64,000 nucleotides of DNA, from the IMG/VR virus record IMGVR_UViG_3300047548_001122, positions 1 to 64,000 of that record; one strand, given 5' to 3'. Under the pieces are notes generated by a model. The model searched no databases. It was given only the letters and a program-made list of their open reading frames with translations, and had not been told where the DNA came from. Position numbers and translations under genes: made by a program. Positions 8,467 through 35,640 of this stretch are shown piece by piece; within the stretch, counting starts at the first letter, position 1; each line of letters starts with the position of its first letter.

Positions 8467-9300
8467 ATGCCGAATTGGTGCAACAATTCTATCACCGTAA
8501 AAGGTGACGTTAAATCAATTGATGAATTTGAAAATTTTCTAAACGAAAAAAATGGTAAAGAATGGTTTGACTTCATTCTGCCTTGTCCTGAAGAATTGAA
8601 AAACGCCGAAGCTTCTTTCCATAAACCATCAAATCAAGAATTGGTCGAAAAATACGGCCATTCTGATTGGTATACATGGTCGTTAGAAAAATGGGGTTGT
8701 AAATGGAATTGTGATGCTCAAGATTGGGATCGAGATGGGGATACGATTACATTTTGGTTCGATTCGCCTTGGGGTCCTCCAATTAGTCTTTACGAAGAAA
8801 TGGAAGAACATGGTTTTAATGTAGAAGCTTACTACCATGAAGAAGGTATGGCTTTTGTAGGAAAATTTACGACAGAAGATGGTGACGATAATTTCGAATA
8901 TTCTGATTTAGAATCGCTTGATGATATTCCAGAAGATATTGTTGAATATTGGGGTCTCCGTGAAATGATCGAAGATCGTATGAGTGAATGGGAATCTGAT
9001 ATGGATTGGGATTCTTCTGACGAACCCGAAGATTTTACTACAGATACCGCAAAAGATTGGATTAAAGGTCTACTGAAAGATGGTGTAGTTGAAGTGACCT
9101 TTACAAAGACTGATGGTACTGAACGAGTGATGAAATGTACTCTTAAAGATGAAGTGATTTCTGAACATTGGATTCCAAAAGAAACAGAATCACAAAGAAA
9201 ATATTCTGAAGATGCTCTACCCGTTTTTGATGTTGAATCTAAAGGTTGGCGCTCATTCCGTTGGGATTCAATTAAAGAAGTAAATTTTAGTTTGGAGTAA
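8467..9300 (+). CDS. DUF1281/YubB-like N-domain fused to WYL_2/SH3-like C-domain
   Basis: MPNWCNN, WGCKWN, FDSPWGPP; C-terminal VTFTKTDGTERVMKCTL, WRSFRWD. Confidence 0.7.
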   Translation: MPNWCNNSITVKGDVKSIDEFENFLNEKNGKEWFDFILPCPEELKNAEASFHKPSNQELVEKYGHSDWYTWSLEKWGCKWNCDAQDWDRDGDTITFWFDSPWGPPISLYEEMEEHGFNVEAYYHEEGMAFVGKFTTEDGDDNFEYSDLESLDDIPEDIVEYWGLREMIEDRMSEWESDMDWDSSDEPEDFTTDTAKDWIKGLLKDGVVEVTFTKTDGTERVMKCTLKDEVISEHWIPKETESQRKYSEDALPVFDVESKGWRSFRWDSIKEVNFSLE

Positions 9301-9417: not shown

Positions 9418-9470
9418 TGTTGTATTTGCCCAACAAACCGCTTGACAAAAAATATTTTTTACTATATACT
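9418..9470 (+). promoter_or_regulatory. sigma70 promoter with upstream TGTTG-N8-CAACA palindrome
   Basis: TTGACA 9442-47, 17 nt, TATACT 9465-70. Confidence 0.75.
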
Positions 9471-10153: not shown

Positions 10154-10396
10154 ATGAAAGACTATACGCCAAAAATTGCAAAAAAAGATTTAGAACATGG
10201 TGCTTATTATAGTGGCAGTTGCCGTAATGCAAACGAAGCACGATGGAATGCGGAGCGTAATGTTTTTGTACATTGGCGTACTAAGTTCAACAATACATTC
10301 TTAGAAGAAATTCGTCATCCAGAAGATGACCAGATGTTTGATGTATTTGTAGTTGAAGAAAAATTGGAAAATCCTACTAAGGAAATTCCCTTTTAA
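10154..10396 (+). CDS. hypothetical phage protein
   Basis: AAGGA SD, 80 aa. Confidence 0.75.
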   Translation: MKDYTPKIAKKDLEHGAYYSGSCRNANEARWNAERNVFVHWRTKFNNTFLEEIRHPEDDQMFDVFVVEEKLENPTKEIPF

Positions 10397-10486: not shown

Positions 10487-10561
10487 GCAGCGGTAGCTTA
10501 AAGGTTAAAGCGTCCGTCTCTAAAACGGACAATGTGGGTTCGATTCCCACCCGCCGCACCA
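10487..10561 (+). tRNA. amber suppressor tRNA (anticodon CTA)
   Basis: TCCGT-CT-CTA-AA-ACGGA anticodon arm; A3.C70 mismatch; A73; CCA. Confidence 0.85.
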
Positions 10562-10580
10562 TTTTTTATAGGAGAGTAAC

Positions 10581-10616
10581 ATGGAGAAACTTGTTGCATA
10601 GATTCGACCGCCATAA
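10581..10616 (+). promoter_or_regulatory. uORF MEKLVA-TAG-IRPP-TAA
   Basis: AGGAG SD at 10570-74; hand-translated. Confidence 0.55.
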
Positions 10617-10665
10617 ATTTCTGTTAGTCTTTTTTACTTTTTAAATTAACTAACAGGAGAATAAT

Positions 10666-11091
10666 ATGTGCATAGAATTAAAAATCAAATCTAAACATTT
10701 AAGTTTAGAATCGAAAGTAATTCGTTTTGAAGAACGTAAACTTCAAAAGCAAGTTAAGTGGTTGTATGAAAATGATCCTACAAAAGATTCCGATTCTTAT
10801 TCGGTGATGAGTAAGAGTGATTATTGGAAAACAGTTTGGAAATTAGGGTCATTGACTGACCACAGAAAACGTGTTGTTGGTACCGAAAACAGGGCTACAT
10901 TTTTAGCAAGAGCTTATATTGAAGGTGTTCCTTATAATAAAGTTGAATCTAAACGTAAGGATGAAAAACACTATGAGTTCAATTGTAAAGTTCTTCCTAG
11001 AGTGTTAGATATGGTTAGGAAATATCATCCTGTTTATGAAGTAAGAAAAAATATTACACTTGATGTATTGAAAGACTGGTGTAATATGTAA
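10666..11091 (+). CDS. basic conserved hypothetical protein with hairpin-occluded SD
   Basis: 141 aa; AGGAG 10655-59 pairs within 10618-28/10649-59. Confidence 0.8.
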   Translation: MCIELKIKSKHLSLESKVIRFEERKLQKQVKWLYENDPTKDSDSYSVMSKSDYWKTVWKLGSLTDHRKRVVGTENRATFLARAYIEGVPYNKVESKRKDEKHYEFNCKVLPRVLDMVRKYHPVYEVRKNITLDVLKDWCNM

Positions 11092-13246: not shown

Positions 13247-13387
13247 CGTTGTATTTTGGCAACAGTGCTTGACAATTGTACTGGTTCCTGTATAATAGAC
13301 TTTGTTGAGTGATTGATGCAGTACGGAAAGAAACGATGTTGTATAAAAACAACACCGCTTGACAAAACGATTAAGTGGTGTTATAAT
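13247..13387 (+). promoter_or_regulatory. two tandem consensus sigma70 promoters, each with an upstream palindrome
   Basis: TTGACA 13269/TATAAT 13291; TTGACA 13359/TATAAT 13382. Confidence 0.8.
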
Positions 13388-15135: not shown

Positions 15136-15166
15136 GCTTGACAAGAGTTTTTATGTGTGGTATAAT
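15136..15166 (+). promoter_or_regulatory. sigma70 promoter for GOLLD-like RNA
   Basis: TTGACA 15138-43, 17 nt, TGG-TATAAT 15161-66. Confidence 0.8.
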
Positions 15167-15194: not shown

Positions 15195-16040
15195 TAGAAT
15201 AAGTGGCGTGAGCCACCCAAAGCAGAAGTGTCCTACACACCTGCGCCAGTGATGGTTCATCTATACAAGCCTGCTCACTAGGGCGACCTAGCGATCACTG
15301 ATAAGACCGGTGGTTGTAACAATGAAGCTGGTGTAGTGGAAAGAATTGTATGCTCAAGCGCCGCAAGGTAACGCAAGTATACAGAGAGTAACGGGTGGTG
15401 CTGACCTCACTACAAAACCAATCAGTTAGTTGGTATGAGAAAGGGTAGTGCATTTGTCCAAGGTGTTGCAACCAAGGGCTTATGTGCAGTATTAATGGTT
15501 TATGGAACTGCCGTGAGGCGTTACATGAATCGTGAAATACTACTGAGTAGCCGGCAGGCAAAAGGTACGTGGTGTGTTGTATGATGTGGATTAATAGTTC
15601 ATGTCGCAACAGGAGCAGCACATCATAGTAGGTTCGATATAGCGTAATGGTAACGCGATTGCCTTTAGAGCAATTGACTGTTGGTTCGAGTCCAACTATC
15701 AAATAAAAAAAGCAAAGACTGCTCCGGTTAGTAGTGAAAGGTATCTAATACTTGGCTCGCAAGAGAATCAAGTCTGACGTAGCTCGCAAGGTGAAATCAG
15801 TTTATATCGGAAGATTCGTAAGGTGTTAGCGCACTTGAATGGCTCGCAAGGTCAACGGGTAAGAAGGTGTAGAGTAACTATTAACGACAAGTCTAATGCC
15901 TGACTTTCAAAACGGCGATACTGGTGATAGACGATGATACCGCAAGGGTTGTCGTGGATGTCGTGAGAAGTCTGACCCGCAAGGTCTTATATAATGCACG
16001 AAGTGTCACTATGGAAGGTGTAATCTCAGCCGACCACTTA
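15195..16040 (+). ncRNA. GOLLD-like large ncRNA
   Basis: about 850 nt, non-coding, many GCAA-capped hairpins, E-loop-like AGUA/GAA motifs, embedded tRNA, tRNA-cluster context. Confidence 0.75.
15633..15704 (+). tRNA. tRNA-like element with TTA (ochre) anticodon inside the GOLLD-like RNA
   Basis: ATTGC-CT-TTA-GA-GCAAT; D and T arms intact; C3.A70 mismatch; no CCA. Confidence 0.6.
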
Positions 16041-17413: not shown

Positions 17414-17454
17414 TATAAATAGACACTCCAGATAATCTTTCAGGAGTGTCTATG
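17414..17454 (+). promoter_or_regulatory. T4 late promoter plus SD-sequestering hairpin
   Basis: TATAAATA 17414-21; ATAGACACTCC/GGAGTGTCTAT. Confidence 0.8.
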
Positions 17455-17904
17455 AAAAAGATAAGTGCAACGGATCAAGAAATAATTGAAGTATCCAATA
17501 CTTCACAATCAGCATCACAAGCAGCACAAATTTTAGGTATTCAATATGGTACATATCGAGTTCATGCTTTACGATTGGGAGTATTTAAACCCAACCAGCG
17601 TGGATTAGGTAGACCAAAACCTAAAAAAGAAGGTAACGGAAAAATTTCACTGAAGGATATCTTTGAAGGAAAACATCCATCATATCAATCTAATAAATTG
17701 AGAAAAAGATTGTTCAGTGAAGGTTATAAAGAGAAAAGGTGTGAGATATGTGGAGTAACTGAATGGAACGGGAAAGAATTATCGTTTCAGCTTGAACATA
17801 TCGACGGAAACTGTTATAATCATACTTTCGATAACTTAATGATTATTTGTCCGAACTGTCATTCACAGACGGACACATATTGTGGTAGAAATAAAACGAA
17901 ATAA
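17452..17904 (+). CDS. free-standing HNH homing endonuclease
   Basis: CEICG, LEHIDGN...N...NL..ICPNCHSQT. Confidence 0.9.
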   Translation: MKKISATDQEIIEVSNTSQSASQAAQILGIQYGTYRVHALRLGVFKPNQRGLGRPKPKKEGNGKISLKDIFEGKHPSYQSNKLRKRLFSEGYKEKRCEICGVTEWNGKELSFQLEHIDGNCYNHTFDNLMIICPNCHSQTDTYCGRNKTK

Positions 17905-17905
17905 T

Positions 17906-18202
17906 GCCTCGATGGTGAAATAGGTAGACACAAGGGACTTGAGATTAAAATTTGAGTGCCCTATTGGAAACGATAGGAGTAGAACCCGTCAAATTCGGTG
18001 AAAGCTTTAAAATGCTAATACCGAGCGAAGCTTAGATAGAAATATCTTTGAACGTGTAGAGACTAGACGGCGGGCATCTAAAGTGAAAGCTATGATGAAG
18101 GTATAGTCCAGACCACAAACAGGAGACTGGTAGTGAAAACTATAGTGGTAAGAAAATCCCTCGCCGCAAGGCGTGCCGGTTCGATTCCGGCTCGAGGTAC
18201 CA
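17906..18202 (+). tRNA. tRNA-Leu(TAA), exons 17906-17940 and 18153-18202
   Basis: joined exons give AGGGA-CT-TAA-AA-TCCCT, long variable arm, CCA. Confidence 0.92.
17941..18152 (+). mobile_element. group I intron (212 nt, no ORF) in the tRNA-Leu anticodon
   Basis: U.G at 5' splice site (ACTT/GAGT), AAATTCGGTGAA, GTAGAGACTA and AAGGTATAGTCC core, terminal G. Confidence 0.9.
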
Positions 18203-18319: not shown

Positions 18320-18910
18320 ATGAAAACAGTAGGCGATAAACTCGAACCATTTGTAGTAACAGGCATTAATCCTGGAAGTGACAAATTTTTTGATATTACA
18401 GAAAAATCTTTTGATGGTAAATGGAAAGTAATTGTTTACTATCCAAAAGATTTCACATTCGTATGTCCAACAGAAATTGTTGCATATGATAAATTGTTCC
18501 AAGATTTTGCAGACCGTGATGCAGTTCTTCTTACCGGTTCAACCGATAACGAATTTTGCAAACTTGCATGGCAAAATGCACATGAAGATTTGAAGAAAAT
18601 CAAACACATTCAGTTTGCTGACACTATTCGTCAAGGTTATCAAACTGGCGATACGCCATCAACACTTGGTGGAGAAAGTAACTATCGTTGGAATGAAGGT
18701 TTGATTAATCAATTAGGAGTTTTTTATGAACCAGCGGGGGCTGCTCTTCGTGCTACTTTTATTGTTGACCCTGATAACGTTATTCAACACGTTACGGTTA
18801 ACAACCTCAATGTAGGTCGTTCGCCAGAAGAAACTCTGCGTGTATTGGATGCTTTGCAAACAGGAGAATTGTGTGCATGTAACCGTACAGTTGGTGGAGA
18901 AACACTATAA
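18320..18910 (+). CDS. ahpC: peroxiredoxin AhpC
   Basis: YPKDFTFVCPTE, RATFIVDP, GELC. Confidence 0.95.
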   Translation: MKTVGDKLEPFVVTGINPGSDKFFDITEKSFDGKWKVIVYYPKDFTFVCPTEIVAYDKLFQDFADRDAVLLTGSTDNEFCKLAWQNAHEDLKKIKHIQFADTIRQGYQTGDTPSTLGGESNYRWNEGLINQLGVFYEPAGAALRATFIVDPDNVIQHVTVNNLNVGRSPEETLRVLDALQTGELCACNRTVGGETL

Positions 18911-35044: not shown

Positions 35045-35212
35045 ATGTTTTACGCTCTTTTCGTAACATTTGTTTTGAACGGTAATCCTCCTGTAGAACA
35101 GAGATGGAAAGCATATGAAACGTTTGATGAATGTTGGGAAGCAGCTACAATAATAGTAAGAGGTAGAGATAATTTTACCGCAAGGTGTGTTTTAGTTGAA
35201 AGTAAAGAATAG
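35045..35212 (+). CDS. 55-aa hypothetical protein
   Basis: hand-translated MFYALFVTFVLNG...ARCVLVESKE. Confidence 0.55.
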   Translation: MFYALFVTFVLNGNPPVEQRWKAYETFDECWEAATIIVRGRDNFTARCVLVESKE

Positions 35213-35540
35213 AATTGTTGTAATCCCTTCAAAGTGAAGGCATTCTGGACGTGGGTTCGACTCCCACCATCTCCACCAAAAGCGCAGATAGACGCTATGT
35301 TGGCTTCAGATCGCAACTAGCGAACATACGCGAGACAGGTTCCCACTACGAACTTCTGTGCTTTTGATGGGGATGACCTGGTTTCGACAGGGTGAGATAA
35401 TGGAGAAGGCAACACGGTAGGCGATGACCGTAAATCAAGCAAAAATAGTAACTGCAAACGATGAAAGTTACGCTCTAGCAGCTTAAGCTCTAGATGAGGT
35501 TTCGCAAGGTGTGCCTTATAATCAAAACACCTTGCACCAA
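35213..35540 (+). ncRNA. ssrA: circularly permuted two-piece tmRNA; tag ANDESYALAA (35454-35486)
   Basis: T arm and CATCTCC-A-CCA (ends 35278) precede GGGGATG..GGTTTCGAC (starts 35369); G3.U70. Confidence 0.93.
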
Positions 35541-35640
35541 ATCACTTAGAGTAGATTAATGATTTTCTCTACTTGACTTTTGATTACATTATGATATATA
35601 ATTTCACATGGCTATTGGCCATGACAACTAGGAGAAAACT

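Follow-up and report, generated by a model that had tools for sequence, protein, structure and literature searches.

A conserved amber-gated leader in phage genomes: a probable translational switch operated by an adjacent suppressor tRNA

Organization of the locus

The window analysed here, namely the whole stretch of 64,000 nucleotides that was studied, comprises positions 1 to 64,000 of the IMG/VR virus record IMGVR_UViG_3300047548_001122. Within it, a suppressor-type tRNA is followed on the same strand by a short leader ORF with an in-frame TAG (the gate), a hairpin that includes the Shine-Dalgarno (SD) sequence of the next gene, and that gene itself (Table 1). The first-pass annotation of the region had described the tRNA, both SD sequences, the upstream ORF, an 11-bp helix and the gene, and this anatomy held, with all coordinates being confirmed to the base.

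Table 1. Features of the tRNA, leader and downstream gene, in window coordinates
Feature	Position	Strand	Remarks
Sigma-70-like promoter	9442..9470	+	TTGACA-17-TATACT (11/12); precedes this block of the tRNA array
Suppressor-type tRNA	10487..10561	+	Anticodon CUA, reads UAG; ARAGORN; Rfam tRNA 69.5 bits
Leader SD	10570..10574	+	AGGAG, 6 nt before the leader ATG
Pre-gate leader ORF	10581..10598	+	MEKLVA (ATG at 10581, then GAG AAA CTT GTT GCA)
Gating amber codon	10599..10601	+	TAG, with A at +4
Post-gate leader	10602..10616	+	ATT CGA CCG CCA (10602-10613) and TAA (10614-10616), i.e. I-R-P-P-stop; proposed termination-stall site
Hairpin 5' arm (anti-SD arm)	10618..10628	+	TTTCTGTTAGT; begins 1 nt past the leader stop
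Hairpin loop	10629..10648	+	A/U-rich, 20 nt
Hairpin 3' arm	10649..10659	+	ACTAACAGGAG; includes the gene SD AGGAG (10655-10659), 6 nt ahead of the ATG at 10666
Regulated gene	10666..11091	+	141-aa basic all-helical protein, pI 9.5

The tRNA has an encoded CCA end and a canonical 7-nt anticodon loop, CUCUAAA. Its ARAGORN label, "tRNA-Pyl", reflects the anticodon alone, and the general Rfam tRNA model fits it well. Its amino-acid identity could not be resolved, as its nearest neighbours among 739 other phage tRNAs are scattered over Leu, Met, Thr, Arg, Trp and other identities. Among the CUA tRNAs of related loci the acceptor stems are highly diverse, which argues against a single dedicated synthetase. 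A second suppressor-type tRNA of the window, tRNA-UUA, lies at 15632-15705. The promoter listed in Table 1 might drive a transcript that spans tRNA-CUA, leader and gene; the stretch from it to 10666 contains neither a stronger promoter-like site nor a plus-strand terminator-like site, and co-transcription remains an inference.

Of the 11 pairs between the two arms of the hairpin, 9 are Watson-Crick and 2 are G-U. The RNAfold structure contains 10 of them (-10.6 kcal/mol, z = -2.7); 5 of 200 shuffled sequences fold as well, and the stability is only moderate. Likewise, the window contains one match to the gated leader motif against 0.28 expected per shuffled window (SD not required), and on its own the motif is only mildly unusual. 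It gains significance because it is kept across homologous loci, in 119 of 121 distinct leaders.

Conservation of the leader and its match to the suppressor tRNA

The comparison drew on 173 homologous loci, whose proteins are 40-95% identical to that of the window and which yielded 121 distinct upstream regions. The first-pass annotation had proposed that a stop-x-PP-stop upstream ORF and an anti-SD helix should be conserved ahead of homologues of the gene, and this prediction was borne out: the 119 conserved leaders share an SD and start codon, an in-frame stop, a Pro-Pro pair and an SD-pairing hairpin, with an SD ahead of the leader start in nearly all of them. The design is retained despite encoding 83 distinct leader peptides. 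The pre-gate segment varies in both sequence and length, mostly between 0 and 10 codons and much longer in a few relatives, with the gate directly following the start codon in 18 leaders, while the distance from gate to Pro-Pro is 2-7 codons, or about 80 codons in seven leaders. As for the departures, one family member (L080) is without any leader, and another (L115) has lost the Pro-Pro, its leader still ending inside the SD. Across 851 kb of related loci, with both strands searched, the combination of SD, TAG gate and PP-stop occurs 140 times at the leader position and nowhere else. An exact-pattern search of 2.9 million viral contigs gave 40 matches, of which 17 are true leaders, all of them upstream of this gene family. 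A DNA search with a 1.2-kb query against 50,697 phage records gave no match, and the module was found in two cultured phages, Synechococcus phage BUCT-ZZ01 (host S. elongatus PCC 7942) and DSS3_MAL1.

The identity of the gate is strongly constrained. The first in-frame stop upstream of the Pro-Pro is TAG in 117 of the 119 leaders, TGA in two and TAA in none, against 52 TAG, 85 TGA and 101 TAA in the two other frames, which served as the control (binomial P ~1e-74, ignoring relatedness). Both TGA-gated leaders (the L028 group and L124) come from loci where the suppressor tRNA has the anticodon UCA and no CUA tRNA is present. Judged by nearest-neighbour identities, these two are not each other's closest relatives, being 55% identical mutually and 65-66% identical to TAG-type neighbours. 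Another locus (L088) carries both suppressor tRNAs, and its gate matches the adjacent CUA tRNA. The base following the gate (+4) is A in 88 leaders, G in 23, C in 8 and T in none, i.e. a purine in 111 of 119; in E. coli, context effects are such that a purine, and not T, at this position favours suppression over termination. Upstream sequence of 1 kb or more was available for 135 loci. In 120 of these a same-strand suppressor tRNA lies upstream, five further ones have a CUA-containing tRNA with an odd anticodon loop, and in the remaining 10 a suppressor tRNA is lacking within 3 kb. Between the tRNA end and the ATG of the gene, the median spacing is 120 nt.

The Pro-Pro end is conserved at the level of codons (CCN CCN in 119 of 121 leaders), with all four bases occurring at the third position of both. 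A stop directly follows in 103 of the 119, and the preceding residue is R, K or H in 78. The other 16 run on past the Pro-Pro, with internal SRGPP, SRDPP or SRSPP motifs, or GPP without an Arg. Those ending in PP-stop also include SRDPP, SRGPP, SREPP and IRSPP versions, most others having R, K or H followed by P-P-stop. The free third positions of the Pro codons, the placement of start, gate, Pro-Pro and stop in one frame, and the stop after the Pro-Pro in 103 leaders lead us to read the post-gate part as translated. RGPP, RAPP, RDPP and RSPP are published arrest motifs that are not relieved by EF-P (PMC12992588; see also PMC10951233 and PMC7897499). The published RAPP-type arrest has an R-x-P-P geometry with Pro-tRNA, rather than a stop codon, in the A site; the core of the window leader, I-R-P-P-stop, is R-P-P rather than R-x-P-P. 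A stall at this site on an 11-residue nascent chain is accordingly proposed only by analogy, there being no arrest data.

In the hairpin, complementarity is conserved rather than sequence. The GGA core of the SD is paired in the minimum-energy fold of all 119 leaders, while 69 different 9-mers flank the SD, the arms differing in sequence with pairing maintained. We compared native arm pairs with arms exchanged among leaders and with shuffled arms: the energies were -13.3, -7.2 and -5.6 kcal/mol, respectively, and the native partner ranked in the top 10% for 102 of the 119 leaders. RNAalifold on MAFFT alignments of 112 and 21 leaders produced no usable single consensus helix, because the register of the helix shifts between subfamilies; the case for covariation therefore rests on the arm-swap energies and not on column counts. 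The position of the arm is similarly restricted. In 116 of 119 leaders the 5' arm starts within -5 to +6 nt of where the second Pro codon ends, its first base lying at -1 to +10 with respect to the Pro codon in the P site, whereas for a ribosome with the gate in the A site it is never closer than +17. This spacing agrees with ribosome footprints, the hairpin falling inside the footprint at the Pro-Pro and outside it at the gate. The support is from structure and geometry only, and dependence on a stall is inferred.

The phages concerned do not appear to be recoded. In the window, the long genes, including the structural genes, are intact under the standard code, and TAG ends 8 of the 97 ORFs, one of them a 592-aa gene. 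TAG terminates about 8% of ORFs both here and in the complete genome of BUCT-ZZ01, which is 93% coding in the standard code and shows no excess of TAG-gated or TAG-interrupted ORFs over TAA and TGA controls. ORF coverage of the window is 0.74 in the standard code, 0.82 with TAG as sense and 0.83 with TGA as sense. The use of the standard code by both the window and BUCT-ZZ01 implies that the gating codon does not reflect ordinary recoding. No other convincing amber-gated gene was found in the window, no pattern of backup stops was seen after TAG-terminated genes, and in the related loci the only other amber-gated candidates are an ORF of ~83 aa, two in-frame fusions and one BUCT-ZZ01 ORF.

The proposed switch and its rivals

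We consider it likely that this element is a translational ON-switch gated by the suppressor tRNA, reporting whether that tRNA works; the mechanism is inferred from sequence alone, without expression, toeprint or readthrough data. In this view, tRNA-CUA, the leader and the 141-aa gene would probably share one transcript. In the free mRNA, the hairpin at 10618-10659 would keep the gene SD paired and the gene untranslated; the pairing is shown and conserved, while the block to initiation is inferred. Ribosomes initiating at 10581 would meet the UAG at codon 7. If RF1 wins, termination would take place with the UAG in the A site and the ribosome front (about +16, counting from the first base of the P site) near 10611, which is short of the hairpin, and the gene would remain off. 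If charged tRNA-CUA decodes the UAG, I-R-P-P would be added and the UAA met with peptidyl-Pro-Pro in the P site. Termination there may be slow; slow termination after a C-terminal Pro-Pro, and RxPP-type arrest despite EF-P, are established for other peptides only. A ribosome parked at the Pro-Pro would hold the bases from 10618 to about 10622-10627 in its mRNA channel, and since these are exactly the ones pairing with AGGAG, the SD would be freed and a second ribosome could start at 10666. Some relatives without a stop-linked stall would use an internal RGPP, RDPP or RSPP arrest motif instead, and in others the leader ORF passes through the hairpin to end in or near the SD, or forms an in-frame fusion with the gene. 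The first-pass claim that the gene is on only when the UAG is read through thus has comparative support, further backed by the gate-anticodon match (TAG with CUA, TGA with UCA) and by the footprint spacing, though as a mechanism it remains an inference.

Several rival explanations merit consideration. The TAG might be an ordinary sense codon, as in code-15-type recoding, within a plain Pro-Pro arrest leader that senses, for instance, EF-P or prolyl-tRNA. The phage does encode CUA and UUA tRNAs, and recoded phages with suppressor tRNAs are known from the literature. This explanation is nonetheless very unlikely given the intact long genes of the window with 8 of 97 ORFs ending in TAG, and the standard-code BUCT-ZZ01 genome without excess TAG-interrupted ORFs. 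Moreover, an incidental sense codon would not be expected to recur in 117 of 119 leaders, 2-7 codons before the Pro-Pro, or to become TGA exactly where the tRNA is UCA. Closer to our own reading is the possibility that what the switch chiefly senses is the activity of a release factor (RF1, or RF2 where the gate is TGA), with the tRNA as a constant competitor and the gene coming on when infection impairs termination. Readthrough depends on the ratio of tRNA to release factor, such that the same anatomy could answer to either, and RF1 alone recognises UAG and RF2 alone UGA, whereas UAA, recognised by both, is never the gate. Against this, the gate is bound to the tRNA by close physical linkage and by the agreement of codon with anticodon, and these phages are not known to make a factor acting on RF1. 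We regard this version as much the less probable one, but it is a variant of the tRNA-gated switch and not its opposite, and the two cannot be separated by sequence alone.

Two other rivals concern the part of the leader beyond the gate. It could be argued that only the ORF up to the TAG is translated, with CCNCC being an RNA element that mimics the 16S anti-SD and the Pro-Pro-stop a by-product. CCUCC is indeed complementary to GGAGG, and 51 of the 119 leaders have an arm whose start precedes the end of the Pro-Pro by up to 5 nt, which places Pro codons within the 5' arm. However, the helix does not include these codons in the window or in many relatives, any of A, T, G and C can stand in the middle of CCNCC in the manner of a codon third position, and CCACC or CCGCC would pair poorly with GGAG. 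The Pro-Pro is also in frame with the gate and directly followed by a stop in 103 of 119, and the TGA-UCA match and the +4 purine are left unexplained, so that we find very little to recommend this view. Ordinary translational coupling, in which any ribosome passing the gate opens the hairpin and the Pro-Pro adds little, without true arrest, finds some support: 16 of 119 ORFs continue past the Pro-Pro, some of them crossing the hairpin before stopping within or next to the SD, L058 and L061 form in-frame fusions with the gene, and L115 still ends inside the SD without a Pro-Pro. Yet 119 of the 121 leaders retain the Pro-Pro, in 103 of these the ribosome meets a stop immediately beyond it, about 50 nt before the gene ATG, where fast termination would open the hairpin only briefly, and leaders that continue past it carry the known strong arrest motifs RGPP, RDPP and RSPP; coupling without arrest thus seems improbable. 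A chance mini-ORF beside a chance hairpin in a tRNA spacer would be compatible with the 0.28 motifs expected in a single window and a hairpin z of only -2.7, but is all but excluded by conservation in 119 of 121 leaders, the co-varying arms and the absence of the motif outside the leader position.

The regulated family and comparison with known systems

The 141-aa protein belongs to a phage-only family with the N-terminus M[SC]IELKIKSKHL and the motif ENRATFLARAY. There are 546 close homologues, the best being 95% identical, and the family comprises 2362 clusters at 50% identity (E <= 1e-3); a profile of the family, built from A2, gives the window ORF 200 bits. In a profile search of 1.84 billion proteins, the best 150 matches listed are all short (97-184 aa), and neither this search nor the ESM Atlas yielded anything informative on function. 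The AF2 model (pLDDT 92) shows three long helices. No family match was obtained in Pfam, PHROGs (with the single protein and with 23 members), NCBIfam or a PDB sequence profile search. Foldseek recovered only generic helical bundles from the PDB (best E = 0.5), amounting to no fold match, and uncharacterised relatives from BFVD. T4 Cef is known as a "modifier of suppressor tRNAs"; an identity of the 141-aa protein with it was considered and set aside, since no PHROG family matched and hence, as far as the PHROG comparison goes, there is no detectable homology.

No direct evidence favours the first-pass suggestion of a role in termination or ribosome rescue: the searches against Pfam, PHROGs, NCBIfam, the PDB and known folds were all without a match, and the protein does not resemble release factors. 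A part for it in the suppression or termination programme itself can be offered only as a low-confidence guess. Alternatively, the tRNA and amber gate may form a plain feed-forward AND gate that delays the gene and limits its leaky expression. A bolder and doubtful reading treats tRNA, leader and gene as a natural "orthogonal" switch and the helical protein as a new translation factor devoted to stop-codon decoding. Under it, the protein might antagonise RF1 or handle ribosomes that have passed read-through stops. As its synthesis would need readthrough, a feedback loop could flip the infected cell into a suppressing state or hold it there, and the main conserved client codon of the tRNA would be the gate codon of its own sensor.

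The tRNA-gated switch shares its layout with SecM-secA, MifM-yidC2 and the ApdA/ApdP systems (RAPP/RGPP peptides), in that a co-directional upstream ORF lies close to the gene, with an SD-hiding hairpin placed where a stalled ribosome would open it. Its C-terminal motif, which would sit at the peptidyl-transferase centre, resembles the R/x-P-P type by sequence alone; some of the relatives carry exactly RGPP, RDPP or RSPP. Unlike in these systems, the leader has only 7-16 codons (in the window 11 residues, 6 of them pre-gate, too few to accommodate a targeting signal), without a signal peptide or membrane segment. It is not a monitoring substrate released by pulling force through Sec/YidC activity, and the regulated protein, in place of the localisation machinery encoded in the SecM-type systems, has no Sec/YidC match. 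The proposed input is readthrough of a stop codon, with the stall falling mostly at termination (PP-stop) rather than at Pro-Pro bond formation. As in trp/his/phe attenuation and erm/cat translational attenuation, the fate of a ribosome at codons of a short leader would set the mRNA fold and downstream expression, and the leader would in effect measure the supply of one charged tRNA. In contrast to both types, the test codon is a stop read by a phage suppressor tRNA, failure would lead to termination and not to stalling, and a single SD-masking hairpin takes the place of terminator and antiterminator folds, with no drug involved. Autoregulation of prfB (RF2) similarly uses an early in-frame stop as the sensor of a contest between release factor and alternative decoding. 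Here, though, suppression by a tRNA would replace the +1 frameshift that an internal SD stimulates in prfB, the stop sits outside the regulated gene, in a leader closing with a TAA 4 codons on in the same frame, and the regulated protein is not release-factor-like.

Parallels also exist among engineered circuits, namely the insertion of a TAG into the tna leader (Liu et al. 2011, as described in PMC6412442) and a feed-forward "leak dampener" using a suppressor tRNA (PMC7969014). As in both, downstream expression would need translation beyond a UAG, with the co-produced suppressor tRNA forming an AND gate; unlike them, the present element is natural and widespread in T4-like phages, and would act through an SD hairpin and translation initiation rather than Rho-dependent termination. 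Stop-codon-recoded phages with TAG or TGA reassigned (crAss-like, Lak and others), whose suppressor tRNAs have been proposed to time late or lytic genes, likewise employ a phage suppressor tRNA to control which proteins are made, but here there is no genome-wide recoding and the conserved client codons are local, being confined to the leader, plus a single adjacent small ORF in some phages. No natural precedent for a suppression-gated leader was encountered in the literature searched in full text, subscription-only papers not being covered. The switch probably represents an arrest-peptide and SD-unmasking leader design with a new, inferred input in the form of stop-codon suppression.

If this is correct, it would be the first natural regulatory leader with nonsense suppression as its input, the same logic having been built independently by synthetic biologists. 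It also bears on the old puzzle of why phages without recoding carry suppressor tRNAs, for which genome notes often report no target genes: the answer offered here is that such a tRNA is paired with a built-in, conserved client, a leader stop matching its anticodon. Arrest motifs of the PP and RxPP types would extend to very short phage leaders of 7-16 codons, and a very large phage protein family (the 2362 clusters noted above) would be flagged as tied to stop-codon decoding. The switch can be tested in two cultured systems, BUCT-ZZ01 on S. elongatus PCC 7942 and DSS3_MAL1.

Composition and conservation of the tRNA-leader module

The window belongs to the 214-kb viral contig IMGVR_UViG_3300047548_001122, has a G+C content of 35%, includes T4-like baseplate genes, and carries 28 tRNA genes in an array and one tmRNA. 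The first-pass annotation had recognized in it a tRNA with the anticodon CUA, a Shine-Dalgarno sequence (SD), a short ORF interrupted by an in-frame TAG, and an 11-bp stem burying the SD of a 141-aa basic protein gene, and all these elements held at the coordinates it gave (see table). We term the short ORF the leader, its early in-frame stop codon the gate, and the 141-aa ORF the regulated gene. RNAfold recovers 10 of the 11 stem pairs (-10.6 kcal/mol, z = -2.7), and the encoded protein has a pI of 9.5. Considered alone, the mini-ORF and hairpin of the window are only mildly improbable.

Features of the window (contig positions) and of compared loci (L-numbers)
Feature	Location	Strand	Details
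ORF	8467-9300		DUF1281_C (Api92-like ferredoxin-like) and WYL_2 Sm-like domains; just upstream of tRNA array
Sigma-70-like promoter	9442-9470	+	11/12 consensus; inside tRNA array
80-aa ORF	10154-10396		Flanked by tRNA-Trp and tRNA-His of the tRNA array; matches phrog_18490 (E = 7.6e-29), whose function is unknown
tRNA, anticodon CUA	10487-10561		ARAGORN; Rfam 69.5 bits
Leader SD	10570-10574		AGGAG
Leader	10581-10616		ATG GAG AAA CTT GTT GCA TAG ATT CGA CCG CCA TAA
11-pair stem	10618-10628 with 10649-10659		9 Watson-Crick and 2 G-U pairs
SD of regulated ORF	10655-10659		AGGAG, within 3' arm of stem
Regulated ORF	10666-11091
Perfect sigma-70 consensus promoters (three)	13269-13296, 13359-13387, 15138-15166	+	12/12; inside tRNA array
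GOLLD RNA	15569-16032		Rfam RF02032, 205.7 bits, full length
UUA tRNA	15632-15705		Enclosed by GOLLD
Group I intron	17931-18133		Rfam RF00028, 65.7 bits
tmRNA	35176-35577		Permuted (two-piece) type; tag peptide ANDESYALAA; 25 kb from module
TGA-gated leader	L028 and copies		ATG TTG TGA GTA TAC GCG CCA CCT TAA
TGA-gated leader	L124		ATG TGA GTA TGT AAG CCA CCT TAG
tRNAs with CTA in anticodon region	L037:2742-2817, L043:2022-2097, L066:336-412, L157, L164, L166		Loops not 7 nt; ARAGORN anticodon calls 'ct' or 'ccta'
~83-aa ORF leaders	L035:2695-2949, L053:2677-2940, L121, L126, L132, L149, L158		..CKEVVFHFNKKHLED..STKG.IKVK.C..; TAG at codon 3-6
Degenerate leader	L115:952-1079		ATG TAG ATT AGA ACA CGC GAC TCT CCT AAC...; Pro-Pro-stop lost
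BUCT-ZZ01 module	L172		tRNA-CUA, MGGDAS-TAG-INLKPP-TAA, hairpin, gene
BUCT-ZZ01 second gated ORF	L172:2895-3230 (record 117437-117772)	-	SD, ATG GGA AGC GAT GGT TCA TAG, then 104 open codons
BUCT-ZZ01 tmRNA	L172:3388-3806
DSS3_MAL1 module			tRNA-CUA, MKS-TAG-IRPPP-TGA, hairpin TCTCCTTGAT/ATCAAGGAGA, gene

Metagenomes contain 546 close homologues of the regulated protein, and a profile search recovered 2362 clusters (50% identity), of which the 150 top-listed are all short (97-184 aa). The family is essentially phage-specific, since a search of 185,579 bacterial and archaeal genomes gave a single match, on a 156-kb MAG contig. For comparison, 171 homologue-encoding loci from viral, metagenome and genome collections, together with two cultured phages, yielded 121 distinct upstream regions. 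A CCN CCN codon pair (Pro-Pro) lies 40-95 nt before the ATG of the gene in 119 of these. Gates were identified by walking upstream in the Pro-Pro frame to the first stop, with the other two frames as control: this stop is TAG in 117 leaders, TGA in two and TAA in none, as against 101 TAA, 85 TGA and 52 TAG in the control walk. The gate lies 2-7 codons upstream of Pro-Pro in 112 leaders, and in nearly all an SD and a start codon are present upstream of it, mostly by 0-10 codons; the pre-gate part is much longer in a few (up to 70 codons), and the gate directly follows the start codon in 18. A stop codon immediately follows Pro-Pro in 103/119. The leader peptides are of 83 distinct kinds. In 851 kb of related loci, both strands included, all 140 occurrences of the full motif with SD are at the leader position. 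When 2.9 million viral contigs were scanned for the exact pattern, 40 matches were returned, of which all 17 with a proper leader precede a family gene, the other 23 being unrelated chance matches. The comparative check proposed in advance, namely that a stop-x-PP-stop uORF and an anti-SD helix should recur upstream of homologues, was run and held in 119 of the 121 regions. The whole module is also present in two cultured phages, the Synechococcus phage BUCT-ZZ01 and DSS3_MAL1, which renders the proposed switch testable.

Correspondence between gate codon and suppressor tRNA

Among the 135 loci with at least 1 kb of upstream sequence, 120 have a suppressor tRNA upstream on the same strand, with a median of 120 nt from the tRNA end to the ATG of the gene, and the CUA-containing tRNA of five further loci has an anomalous anticodon loop. 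The odd-loop tRNA genes listed in the table occupy the usual position of the CUA suppressor, upstream of TAG-gated leaders.

In both TGA-gated cases the suppressor tRNA of the locus has the anticodon UCA, and a CUA tRNA is lacking. The proteins of these two loci are 55% identical to each other and each 65-66% identical to TAG-type neighbours, which points to two separate joint switches of codon and anticodon. At L088, a locus with both suppressor tRNAs, the gate agrees with the adjacent CUA tRNA. This codon-anticodon match is the strongest single argument for inferring that the neighbouring tRNA decodes the leader. The gate is followed by A in 88 leaders, by G in 23, by C in 8 and never by T (n = 119); the known context rules favouring suppression in E. 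coli fit this distribution.

A different explanation, that TAG is generally recoded, is contradicted by the window and by the one complete phage genome read. The standard code leaves the genes of the window intact, ORF coverage rises no further with TAG read as sense than with TGA read as sense, and TAG terminates 8 of 97 window ORFs, including a 592-aa gene. Likewise, under the standard code 93% of the complete 156-kb genome of BUCT-ZZ01 is coding, with TAG as the stop of 20/239 ORFs. No further convincing amber-gated ORFs were found in the window, and across the BUCT-ZZ01 genome TAG-gated ORFs are not in excess over TAA and TGA controls, there being exactly one leader-like motif, beside the tRNA-CUA. 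Given the absence of recoding and the presence of gated ORFs beside the module, the conserved clients of the tRNA therefore appear to be local.

The second amber-gated ORF of BUCT-ZZ01 directly follows the family gene, and its start (MGSDGS-TAG-IN) is akin to that of the leader (MGGDAS-TAG-IN); the GenBank annotation starts at an internal GTG and so covers only the final 57 codons, and Pfam gave no match. In seven leaders a conserved ~83-aa ORF, without convincing Pfam or PHROG match, replaces the short peptide, retaining the Pro-Pro-stop end just before the SD hairpin. The UUA tRNA within the GOLLD RNA of the window would act on UAA, making it an ochre suppressor; neither the window nor the related loci yielded a TAA-gated leader.

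The Pro-Pro element, the SD hairpin and the inferred mechanism

All four third-position bases are used at both Pro codons (first: CCA 71, CCT 29, CCG 14, CCC 5; second: CCT 42, CCC 31, CCA 29, CCG 17), and the start, the gate, Pro-Pro and the stop are all in the same frame, from which we infer that the post-gate segment is read as codons. Pro-Pro is immediately preceded by R, K or H in 78/119. Termination is reportedly slowed by C-terminal prolines (Hayes, Bose and Sauer 2002). In 16 leaders the ORF runs past Pro-Pro and contains SRGPP, SRDPP, SRSPP or GPP; RGPP, RAPP, RDPP and RSPP are ribosome-arrest motifs that are not relieved by EF-P and are avoided in bacterial proteomes (PMC12992588; PMC10951233, PMC7897499).

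When the stretch running from Pro-Pro to the ATG is folded, the SD core is paired in the minimum-energy structure of 119/119 leaders. The arm sequences vary widely (e.g. TTCTCTTTG/CAAGGAGAA, CCTTGATTA/TAATCAAGG, CCCTAAATTG/CAATTTAGG), with 69 different 9-mers adjoining the SD. No column-based consensus helix was obtained, the helix register shifting between subfamilies, and arms were therefore swapped between leaders instead of counting pairs. Native arms pair at -13.3 ± 2.4 kcal/mol, swapped arms at -7.2 ± 2.8 and shuffled arms at -5.6 ± 2.0, and the native partner is within the best 10% in 102/119.

Relative to the end of the second Pro codon, the 5' arm starts between -5 and +6 nt in 116/119 leaders, which corresponds to -1 to +10 when numbering begins (+1) with the Pro codon in the P site. 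The ribosomal mRNA channel reaches roughly +11 to +16, and the arm start is thus inferred to fall inside the reach of a ribosome at Pro-Pro in these 116 leaders. The gate-to-arm distance is always at least 10 nt, mostly 13-22 nt, so that a ribosome whose A site holds the gate has the arm no nearer than +17. In the window, termination at the UAG would leave the leading edge of the ribosome at ~10611, and a ribosome held at Pro-Pro-UAA would cover 10618 to ~10622-10627, namely the partners of AGGAG.

The sequence directly shows which parts are present, how conserved and how spaced they are, and that codon and anticodon match; the steps that follow are inferred. The module would be co-transcribed from the sigma-70-like promoter, and the sigma-70 consensus promoters suggest that host RNA polymerase transcribes the array strongly and early. 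The hairpin would mask the SD of the regulated gene and stay closed upon termination at UAG. Suppression would let the ribosome advance to Pro-Pro-stop, where slow termination would keep the anti-SD arm within the ribosome, leaving the SD free. The stall step has variants: in some leaders an internal RxPP arrest motif takes the place of the termination stall, in others (L025, L115) the ORF extends across the hairpin and ends within or next to the SD, and in L058 and L061 it is fused in frame with the gene. What stays constant is thus the gate, with the stall as its usual amplifier. On sequence evidence alone, we regard a readthrough-gated switch as the likely identity of the element, and hold the stall step with rather less confidence. 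The degenerate leader of L115 differs in sequence from that of L152 (IRTRSPP-stop) and is shifted in frame, its ORF running to a TAA inside the SD (TAAGGAG); with Pro-Pro-stop lost, gating there would be by translational coupling, not stalling.

Relation to known systems and the regulated protein

The output side of the switch resembles SecM, MifM and ApdA-type arrest leaders, but it lacks their monitoring substrate; the input side resembles classical attenuation, in which one charged tRNA is measured at a test codon. It shares with prfB an early in-frame stop as sensor but not the frameshift, and, unlike in recoded phages, recoding is not genome-wide. The switch thus fails the defining tests of each of these families. 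Engineered circuits of the same logic exist (PMC6412442; PMC7969014), and no natural precedent was found in the open-access full-text literature searched, within which the input, namely stop-codon readthrough by a suppressor tRNA, has no prior description in nature.

Sequence and fold searches with the regulated protein matched nothing informative; its AlphaFold model, of high confidence (pLDDT 92), predicts three long helices. Invariant family residues include K8, K10, H11, K25, H66, R67, R76 and R82, and one may speculate that these would suit nucleic-acid binding. A phage tmRNA lies less than 3 kb from the module in seven metagenomic loci (L029-L031, L109, L114, L133, L151) and in BUCT-ZZ01. 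The conjecture of the first-pass annotation that the protein acts in termination or ribosome rescue stays a conjecture, this proximity being suggestive of such a link, but not evidence. Alternatively, by analogy with PMC7969014, the switch might serve feed-forward timing or leak control, which would need no termination or rescue function.

Elsewhere in the window, the group I intron lies between an ORF without Pfam match (17446-17904) and an AhpC/TSA peroxiredoxin ORF (18320-18910).
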